From Trichosphaerium sp. ATCC 40318 (taxonomy: Eukaryota; Protista; Tubulinea), in the NCBI GenBank assembly GCA_038496445.1, contig JALMLS010000309.1, positions 124,001 to 188,000 on the forward strand: a stretch of DNA of 64,000 bases, written 5' to 3'. A model generated the notes under the pieces. That model ran no database searches, was not told the origin of the DNA, and saw only the letters and a list, made by a program, of their open reading frames with translations. This document shows, in pieces, positions 44,321 through 46,555 of this stretch; positions within the stretch are counted from its first letter, which is position 1; every line of letters begins with the position of its first letter. The position numbers and the translations under genes were made by a program.

Positions 44321-46555
44321 TTAATAACTTCTACCGAACAAAGCCCAGCATGTAGCTTTACCACCAGTTACAAAGCATACTGTTTCTTCTGTAAGCTCTG
44401 GAAGATCAAGACCAGGTTGGCCAGCAAAAGGAATACAGAGAGACTTGGCTGCGCCAGTCAATTCAAATTTGGCATCAGTAGCAGTTACAGTTGATTCAGC
44501 ACTGCGTTTCTTAACCTCATTTTCAGACTCTACAGTACCACACCATGGTACCAAGACCATGTTTCCGCTGTTGAGGTGAACCATAAATTCATCCCAAGTT
44601 GTAGCTTTTTTGATGTGTGCGTTCCTGACTTCCAAAGCTTTTTCTGAGGTGGTATAAAGTCAGTTTTTGGAAGGTTTCATAGTAATCAAAAAAAAAAAAT
44701 TCTTTTTGTAAAATGCATCAGATCTCATAATCTGTATACTGTCATGTTGACCAGATTCGTCAAACAGGACTGCACTGGCCTCCAGAGTTGGTCATTTGTC
44801 ATCACTTGCACAAACCACACCAAAAAAAAATTTCCAATAAAAAACAAAGGGGTTCAAAAACGTACGGAGCAAGCTATCGTGTACGGCATCAAGCAACTTC
44901 TGGACAGAGTCGGCAAACCCTTCCCATGAGATAACAGTCTTCTGACCTTCTTCACCTCTTGCTTTATCACGGCGAACAGCCATTGCTGAGGATTTACCCA
45001 TATCGCGTGAACCAAGTTCAACACGGAGTGGTACACCTGACAATCGATATTTAGTACGTAGTGTCGACAATTTACCTCAGCAAAAAAAAGTACCCTTGGT
45101 CTCCCAGTGACTGTATTTCCAGCCTGGGTTGTAGTTTTCGCGGTCATCAACGTAAGTACGAATACCAACAGCATTAAGAACAGCAGCAAGTTCGTGCATT
45201 TTGGTATTGAGAGCCTCTTTGTTGGCCTTCTTGTAGATTGGTACGAAAGCAACTTGAATCTCAGCAGCTCTAGGTGGGAGTACTAATCCGTTATCGTCAC
45301 CGTGGATCATAACAGCTGTGCCAATCTACACAATACGTCAGAAGAAATTCAACAAAATAAAAAAATAAAATAATAATAATAGCAGCTGTAGAGCACGTAC
45401 AGCACGAGTTGAAAGACCCCATGAGTTTTGCCATGGAAGCTCTTTTTTTTTCTCTTCAGACTCGAAGCTAATGTTAAACATTTTTGCGAAATTTTGTCCG
45501 AGGCAATGAGAGGTAGCAGCTTGGATAGATCTACCAGTTTGTGCTACAAAAGCTTCGACAGTTGTAGTGTAAAGACCACCAGCGAACTTTTCTTTTTCAG
45601 ATTTCTTACCTGGACAGAACAAAACGTTTTAATTACTTGAATACAAACTGAGAAAAATTGCAGAATTGAAAAGGAAGCCTTCTTTGTCTTACCCTTGATA
45701 ACTGGTACAGCCAATAATTCGTGGTACAATTGAGAGTACAAATTCAAGATAGCCATAACCTATAAACGACGTGGTTAACGATTTTAAACTTTTTTTTTTG
45801 TTTTTCGATTAAAATGCGTACTTCTTCTTCTGCTTCGGCCTTTTTGGCGAAAGCGGAGTGACCCTCTTGCCACAAAAATTCTCTTGACCTCAAAAATGGG
45901 ATTGGGTGCTTGAATTCCCATCGGACAACGTTACACCATTGGTTTAGTTTCAATGGAAGGTCGCGGTGAGAGCGGATCCTGTAGTTGAAGTATTAGAAGC
46001 GATAAAAACGCAAAATTTGAGTAAACAAAATTTTAAATTATTATTTCGAGGCGTACCATTTAGCGTAGATTGGGTACATTACGGTCTCAGATGTTGGGCG
46101 AACTGCAATTGGTTCTTTCAACTCAGATTGTCCAGATTTTGTTACCCAAGCGACCTACAAGCGGTTTGTATGCGTTGGGCGTAAATTTGTGAACAAGTAG
46201 ACGGCAATTGTCTCCTTTTGCATACCTCGGCTGCAAAACCCTCAATATGATCTTTTTCTTTGGTGAGAGCGCGCTCAGACACAAAAATAGGGAAATACGC
46301 GTTCTTTACGCCCATCTTCTTAATCCTGCTGTCAAAGTAGCCTTGAATCTTCTCCCATAGCGCAAACGCCCAAGGACGAAGAATGTAACATCCAGAGATA
46401 TCAGAGTATTCAATTAACTCTGCTCGGAGCACAATCTGCGTGTACCATTCTGAAAAGTCACCATCTTTGGTGGCAGTGATACCAAGCAATTGAGCTTTAC
46501 CACCTTTCTTTTTTTGTTGCTTTTTCTGTTGCTGCTTCTTCTTTGGTTCAGCCAT
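44321..46555 (-). CDS. Prolyl-tRNA synthetase (eukaryote/archaeal type, stand-alone)
   Basis: [63 protein letters not shown]-terminal LFGRSY. Confidence 0.97.
44714..44810 (-). ncRNA. Intronic box C/D snoRNA, predicted guide for Cm34 of elongator tRNA-Met (SNORD97-like)
   Basis: Sense to the host, in intron 44644-44865: tgca-a-GTGATGA (C box, 44805-44799) ... CAGATTATGAGA-t-CTGA (D box, 44721-44718)-tgca, with 4-bp terminal stem and internal tgacca/tggtca stem. Confidence 0.85.

Follow-up and report, generated by a model that had tools for sequence, protein, structure and literature searches.

Intron 7 of the prolyl-tRNA synthetase (ProRS) gene of the amoeba Trichosphaerium sp. ATCC 40318 contains a 97-nt unit that, judging from its boxes, its guide and its placement, is probably a genuine intronic box C/D guide RNA for wobble C34 of the amoeba's elongator tRNA-Met, as SNORD97 is in human. 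The unit lies within the 64,000-nt stretch of DNA that was analysed (contig JALMLS010000309.1, positions 124,001 to 188,000), which we refer to as the window, and its features are collected in Table 1 in window coordinates. In the pathway that we propose, the unit would be transcribed within the ProRS pre-mRNA, freed from the 222-nt intron after splicing, and trimmed by exonucleases as far as the particle (Snu13, Nop56, Nop58 and fibrillarin) that assembles on the terminal stem and C/D kink-turn. The 13-nt antisense upstream of the D box would then open the anticodon stem of elongator tRNA-Met(CAU) by pairing with its nucleotides 30-42, and fibrillarin would methylate the 2'-OH of wobble C34, which faces the fifth guide position. 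We infer that a mature RNA of about 97 nt accumulates in the amoeba and that Cm34 is formed there.

The elements that define a box C/D snoRNA, a RUGAUGA C box and a CUGA D box joined by a short terminal stem, are all present, and the canonical boxes (GTGATGA and CTGA) and tgca/tgca stem that a preliminary description of this DNA had reported at 44714-44810 are confirmed on the minus strand. A G-U pair (44811/44713) lengthens the terminal stem from 4 to 5 pairs, a single A separates the 5' UGCA of the stem from the C box, and a 64-nt interior lies between the C box and 44734. For the internal C' and D' boxes there are degenerate candidates only, and such internal copies are usually imperfect in the definition of the box C/D family (PMC6601510). 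Between the C box and the possible D' box CUGG lie 13 nt, CAAAUGACCAACU (within 44798-44782, minus strand), which would pair with AGUUGGUCAUUUG.

Table 1. Coordinates of the candidate box C/D unit and of its host intron in the window
Feature	Position	Strand	Basis or remark
Candidate box C/D snoRNA, 97 nt	44810-44714	minus	Sequence; sole C/D-plus-stem motif in the window; inside the 162-nt RNA-run contig
Terminal stem, 5' half, UGCA	44810-44807	minus	Pairs with 44717-44714
Terminal stem, 3' half, UGCA	44717-44714	minus	Pairs with 44810-44807
C box GUGAUGA (canonical RUGAUGA)	44805-44799	minus	Sequence; consensus per PMC6601510
D box CUGA	44721-44718	minus	Sequence
D-box antisense element CAGAUUAUGAGAU, 13 nt	44734-44722	minus	G 44726 at D+5
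Possible degenerate D' box CUGG	44785-44782	minus	13 nt past the C box; weak, without the final A
Possible C' box UGACGA	44762-44757	minus	One mismatch to UGAUGA; tentative reading
Internal hairpin GGCCAG/CUGGUC	44780-44749	minus	Centroid structure
Host intron 7 of ProRS	44865-44644 (222 nt, GT..AG)	minus	Gene model; spliced contig of run X1 skips exactly these 222 nt
Branch-site candidate CUGAC	44663-44659	minus	16 nt before the 3' splice site, 53 nt past the snoRNA unit; putative, read from sequence

It is the guide that identifies the likely target. The 12-mer antisense CAGATTATGAGA (RNA: CAGAUUAUGAGA) lies at 44734-44723, where the preliminary description had placed it, although the single U (44722) that separates it from the D box had gone unstated. 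With that U taken as position 1, G 44726 comes fifth upstream of the D box and stands opposite the C of CAU in UCUCAUAAUCUG, and the earlier assignment of D+5 to a G facing wobble C34 is correct. The 12-mer has no second copy in the window. The invariant D-box-dependent antisense of SNORD97 and SCARNA97 is present before the D box: the 12 nt that adjoin it, AGAUUAUGAGAU (AGATTATGAGAT; window 44733-44722), are exactly the 3' antisense of human SNORD97, including the U at D+1. The 3' end of human SNORD97 has been printed as ...GAAGATTATGAGAT ATGA GGGCA in the reporter oligonucleotide for a SNORD97-derived small RNA (PMC4288155). The U at D+1 does not form a Watson-Crick pair; it can join G30 of the tRNA only as a G-U wobble.

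Experiments have established SNORD97 and SCARNA97 as guides for Cm34 in the human elongator tRNA-Met (Vitali and Kiss 2019, PMC6601510). The same study states the D+5 rule, describes the antisense of these two RNAs as phylogenetically invariant, and reports that a search of human stable RNAs with that antisense finds tRNA-Met only (PMC6601510). On the side of the target, the tRNA-Met(CAT) genes of vertebrates, Ciona, Drosophila, Bombyx, Arabidopsis and Brassica all contain GTCTCATAATCT without variation, and the base that follows it is G in vertebrates and Ciona (Suppl. Fig. S4, PMC6601510). With the anticodon arm of the vertebrate/Ciona type, the amoeba guide forms 13 bp (12 Watson-Crick and one G-U) with C34 at D+5, and the duplex energy with the vertebrate-type arm is -18.2 kcal/mol, compared with -4.1 +/- 2.0 for shuffled targets; with the fly and plant forms of tRNA-Met it forms 11-12 pairs. 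The complementarity to the arm of a typical elongator tRNA-Met(CAU) that had been claimed for this antisense therefore holds for tRNA-Met of the vertebrate type. From the invariance of the arm elsewhere, the amoeba's own elongator tRNA-Met(CAU) presumably carries GUCUCAUAAUCUG; neither the window nor the fetched loci gave a tRNA when searched with ARAGORN.

Boxes and stem of this kind are found at chance frequency, since a scan of both strands of the 64 kb for RTGATGA followed by CTGA at a distance of 40-140 nt, with 4 bp or more of flanking stem, returned one motif, against 0.99 +/- 1.0 expected from first-order Markov shuffles. The boxes alone thus prove nothing, and the case rests on four independent points: the guide, the intron, the placement and the RNA. 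That box-like motifs have merely come together in a long intron, with no stable RNA and no function, is also in keeping with a whole-RNA fold of the unit no better than shuffles (z = -0.85), with the degenerate C'/D' boxes and with the results from Rfam. No Rfam family was matched at gathering scores in the whole window, and within the intron, at E up to 10, there were weak, mutually inconsistent C/D matches of chance level among which SNORD97, the family that the preliminary description had proposed to check, was absent (the sensitivity of any Rfam SNORD97 model being unconfirmed). We nevertheless regard a chance origin as distinctly improbable, because the guide matches a known snoRNA-guided site in register at 12 of 12 positions, for which the probability in one fixed register is about 6e-8 per candidate, and this value is still small when all known sites and windows are allowed for: the expected number of false positives of such quality is about 0.01-0.02, assuming a few hundred known methylated sites, some 1,300 scanned windows and one chance C/D motif in each. 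A chance origin also has to account for the position of the unit in the sole enlarged intron, in the sense orientation and at the canonical distance from the 3' splice site, and for the confinement of intronic RNA-run contig coverage to this segment.

The host gene can be modelled in frame as 8 exons encoding 528 aa (46555-44321, minus strand), and the matches to its C-terminal exon carry the Pfam domain PF09180 (ProRS-C_1). Its introns measure, in order, 71, 78, 62, 83, 75, 57 and 222 nt, and all seven are absent, exactly as modelled, from a 1546-nt transcript contig of the public run X1 (depth 64). Model and spliced contig together bear out the earlier reading of a 222-nt ProRS intron with the unit ending 70 nt before the 3' splice site. 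This intron is the only enlarged one in the gene, at 222 nt compared with 57-83 nt for the other six, and the unit within it begins 55 nt after the 5' splice site and lies on the same strand as ProRS, so that it would be transcribed in the sense orientation within an intron that is spliced. Such a placement (~70 nt to the 3' splice site and ~50 nt to the branch point) is reportedly the optimum that Hirose and Steitz in 2001 found for box C/D particles that assemble on introns in a splicing-dependent manner. The size of the intron and the position of the unit fit an intronic snoRNA.

A neighbouring gene on the plus strand contains a 67-nt GT..AG intron (window 43174-43242) that is removed in a low-depth X1 contig; this contig has nine differences from the window in ~125 nt, and may represent a paralogue or another allele.

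The orthologous intron, whose examination in relatives the preliminary description had suggested, was sought with the C-terminal ProRS exon as the query of HMMER and word searches, in which the best identities were 60% (representatives) and 51% and no close relative was found. The short ProRS fragments that were fetched proved not to be exon ORFs. One ProRS contig (L001) is without an intron at the position of amoeba intron 7. Two ProRS fragments on Logan and JGI contigs (L085 and L086) were set aside, since their coding sequence is continuous with an in-frame TAA or TGA; at L086:1600-1625 and L085:55-70 it is these in-frame codons, and not introns, that split ProRS into two called proteins, as expected under a ciliate-type genetic code.

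The RNA data single out the same segment of intron 7. A separate 162-nt contig of run X1 (depth 6), 100% identical to the window over 44688-44849, comprises the unit and extends past it by 39 nt at the 5' end and by 26 nt at the 3' end; X1 is one small run seen at the level of contigs, from which strand, mature ends and abundance are not readable, and while its RNA label is a guess, its cDNA content is shown by the spliced contig. No contig of this run covers the six other ProRS introns, the ends of intron 7 or the intergenic DNA flanking the gene. This pattern argues against genomic DNA contamination and plain intron retention, and fits a protected, partly trimmed intron fragment, which, since it exceeds the proposed ends on both sides, is to be read as a precursor or intermediate rather than the mature RNA.

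The persistence of an intron segment in the RNA of run X1 is also what might be seen if the segment were a cis-acting element that influences ProRS expression, through splicing or intron stability, with its snoRNA shape incidental or co-opted; cis roles of intronic snoRNAs within the host locus have reportedly been reviewed (PMC11028025). Such an element seems to us hardly credible, since nothing in the sequence suggests it, the guide has no complement elsewhere in the window, and deletion of SNORD97 or SCARNA97 in human cells left host splicing unaffected (Fig. S5 legend, PMC6601510).

The same guide recurs in environmental and archaeal sequences. Metagenome contigs were scanned for TGATGA, a gap of 40-70 nt, AGATTATGAGA, any base and then CTGA or ATGA, which yielded 83 loci, most of them coding or chance but several resembling real box C/D RNAs; Rfam returned nothing useful on twenty of the metagenome loci. 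The same 11-12 nt guide beside a D box, together with a terminal stem, is found in L047/L061, in L014/L040/L073/L032 and in an sRNA of Nitrososphaera. The first pair (L047:3780-3842, minus; L061:2740-2803, plus) are ~75-nt box C/D candidates with the guide CAGAUUAUGAGAU, the D box AUGA and a common 5-bp GAAUU/AAUUC stem, which differ only outside the boxes and guide. They lie on related 38-55 kb contigs without long ORFs that look eukaryotic and are perhaps fungal; fungi are absent from the lineages listed by Vitali and Kiss (PMC6601510). L014, L040, L073 and L032, metagenome contigs of ~20% G+C, carry a family of box C/D candidates with the 15-nt guide UUCAGAUUAUGAGAC, which is complementary to nucleotides 30-44 of vertebrate-type tRNA-Met, and L028 has a 7-bp stem and GAAGAUUAUGAGAU AUGA G as in human SNORD97.

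A further form, in L009, L067 and L069, has a common GGAUGC/GCAUCC stem, canonical C'/D' boxes and a 12-nt spacer, AGAUUAUGAGA(U/C), between C' and D. A genome scan located the same form in a Nitrososphaera MAG and a Thermoproteota MAG (L089 and L090; L089:5841-5920, minus). Its occurrence in archaeal MAGs identifies this form as an archaeal sRNA, in agreement with published archaeal guidance of tRNA-Met Cm34 (PMC6601510), and the sRNA of L089 and L090 is presumably a thaumarchaeal tRNA-Met Cm34 guide. None of these environmental and archaeal RNAs resembles the amoeba RNA outside the guide.

These RNAs bear on the possibility that the amoeba unit is a genuine box C/D snoRNA with a different main substrate, either a lineage-specific rRNA or snRNA site or a non-methylating role, to which the tRNA match would be secondary. 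Most eukaryotic box C/D RNAs do target rRNA, and no target was identified for the region before the possible D' box (CAAAUGACCAACU). We consider this unlikely, however, since the antisense is letter for letter that of SNORD97, for which a search of human stable RNAs found no rRNA or snRNA target (PMC6601510), and since a target that is both shared and conserved is suggested by the occurrence of the same guide in box C/D RNAs of unrelated scaffold.

As far as can be read from its sequence, the amoeba unit is most likely a guide for methylation of the tRNA-Met wobble base, and would represent a new lineage for a known mechanism. To our knowledge, RNA-guided 2'-O-methylation of tRNA has been proven in eukaryotes for few cases, of which SNORD97/SCARNA97 is the clearest. 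If true, the amoeba candidate would take the SNORD97 system beyond animals and plants, and would support an origin of guided tRNA-Met Cm34 before the eukaryotic supergroups diverged, perhaps in continuity with the archaeal guide; being compact (97 nt), single-copy and easily deleted, it would also provide a convenient test case. Since the mechanism, the target and broad conservation were in print already, the advance is an incremental one. The deep conservation advanced in the preliminary description would accordingly be extended to a further lineage but was overstated as a novelty, given that insects, Ciona, flowering plants and the archaeal link already appear in PMC6601510. A broader reading, which we put forward as speculative and rather doubtful, is that the tRNA-Met C34 guide forms one ancient box C/D lineage that passed from an archaeal ancestor to the last eukaryotic common ancestor with its 12-nt antisense frozen, including the U at D+1, and is now seen in Amoebozoa, animals, plants, fungus-like contigs and Nitrososphaera; residence in a ProRS intron would then couple tRNA modification to expression of the charging machinery.

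Literature searches returned no protist or amoebozoan report of a tRNA-Met C34 guide; the box C/D snoRNA supplement for D. discoideum contains no TTATGAG motif, and the box C/D catalogue of that species includes nine orphans (published snoRNA survey). For insects, Ciona and flowering plants, single SNORD97/SCARNA97 candidates have been predicted (Vitali and Kiss 2019, PMC6601510; Suppl. Fig. S3C), none of them from Amoebozoa or any protist. On their description, these candidates are defined by the invariant D-box antisense that the amoeba unit also carries, and by the conserved arm of tRNA-Met. Box C/D sRNAs that guide tRNA-Met Cm34 are also known from archaea (Joardar et al. 2011, as cited in PMC6601510). 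The Nitrososphaera sRNA and the amoeba unit carry the same guide, in one and the same register, but the former is a compact dual-guide RNA with canonical C'/D' boxes and 12-nt spacers encoded by a free-standing gene, whereas the amoeba unit is intronic. The likeness of the two guides would fit shared descent as well as convergence on a conserved target.

Ordinary rRNA-guiding intronic snoRNAs are like the amoeba unit in their boxes, terminal stem, sense orientation, distance of ~70 nt to the 3' splice site and translation-related host. Unlike theirs, the antisense of the amoeba unit matches a tRNA anticodon arm, and we know of no rRNA site that it matches. Human SNORD97 is ~140 nt in length. 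Outside the guide no similarity to it is detectable, the Rfam homology test being negative, and it is therefore by its guide that the unit is to be filed as an analogue or homologue of SNORD97. The D box of the amoeba unit is CUGA, whereas that in the printed human SNORD97 3' end is AUGA; the amoeba unit measures 97 nt, whereas SCARNA97 contains a pyrimidine-rich insert of 93 nt (PMC6601510). Human SNORD97 and SCARNA97 (SNORD133) and the amoeba unit are all intron-encoded box C/D sequences that have in common the same 12-nt antisense, including the U at D+1, and the same placing of C34 of vertebrate-type tRNA-Met at D+5, with the amoeba guide forming one more base pair, at G42; their hosts are EIF4G2 and LARP4 in human and ProRS in the amoeba, all of them translation-related genes.
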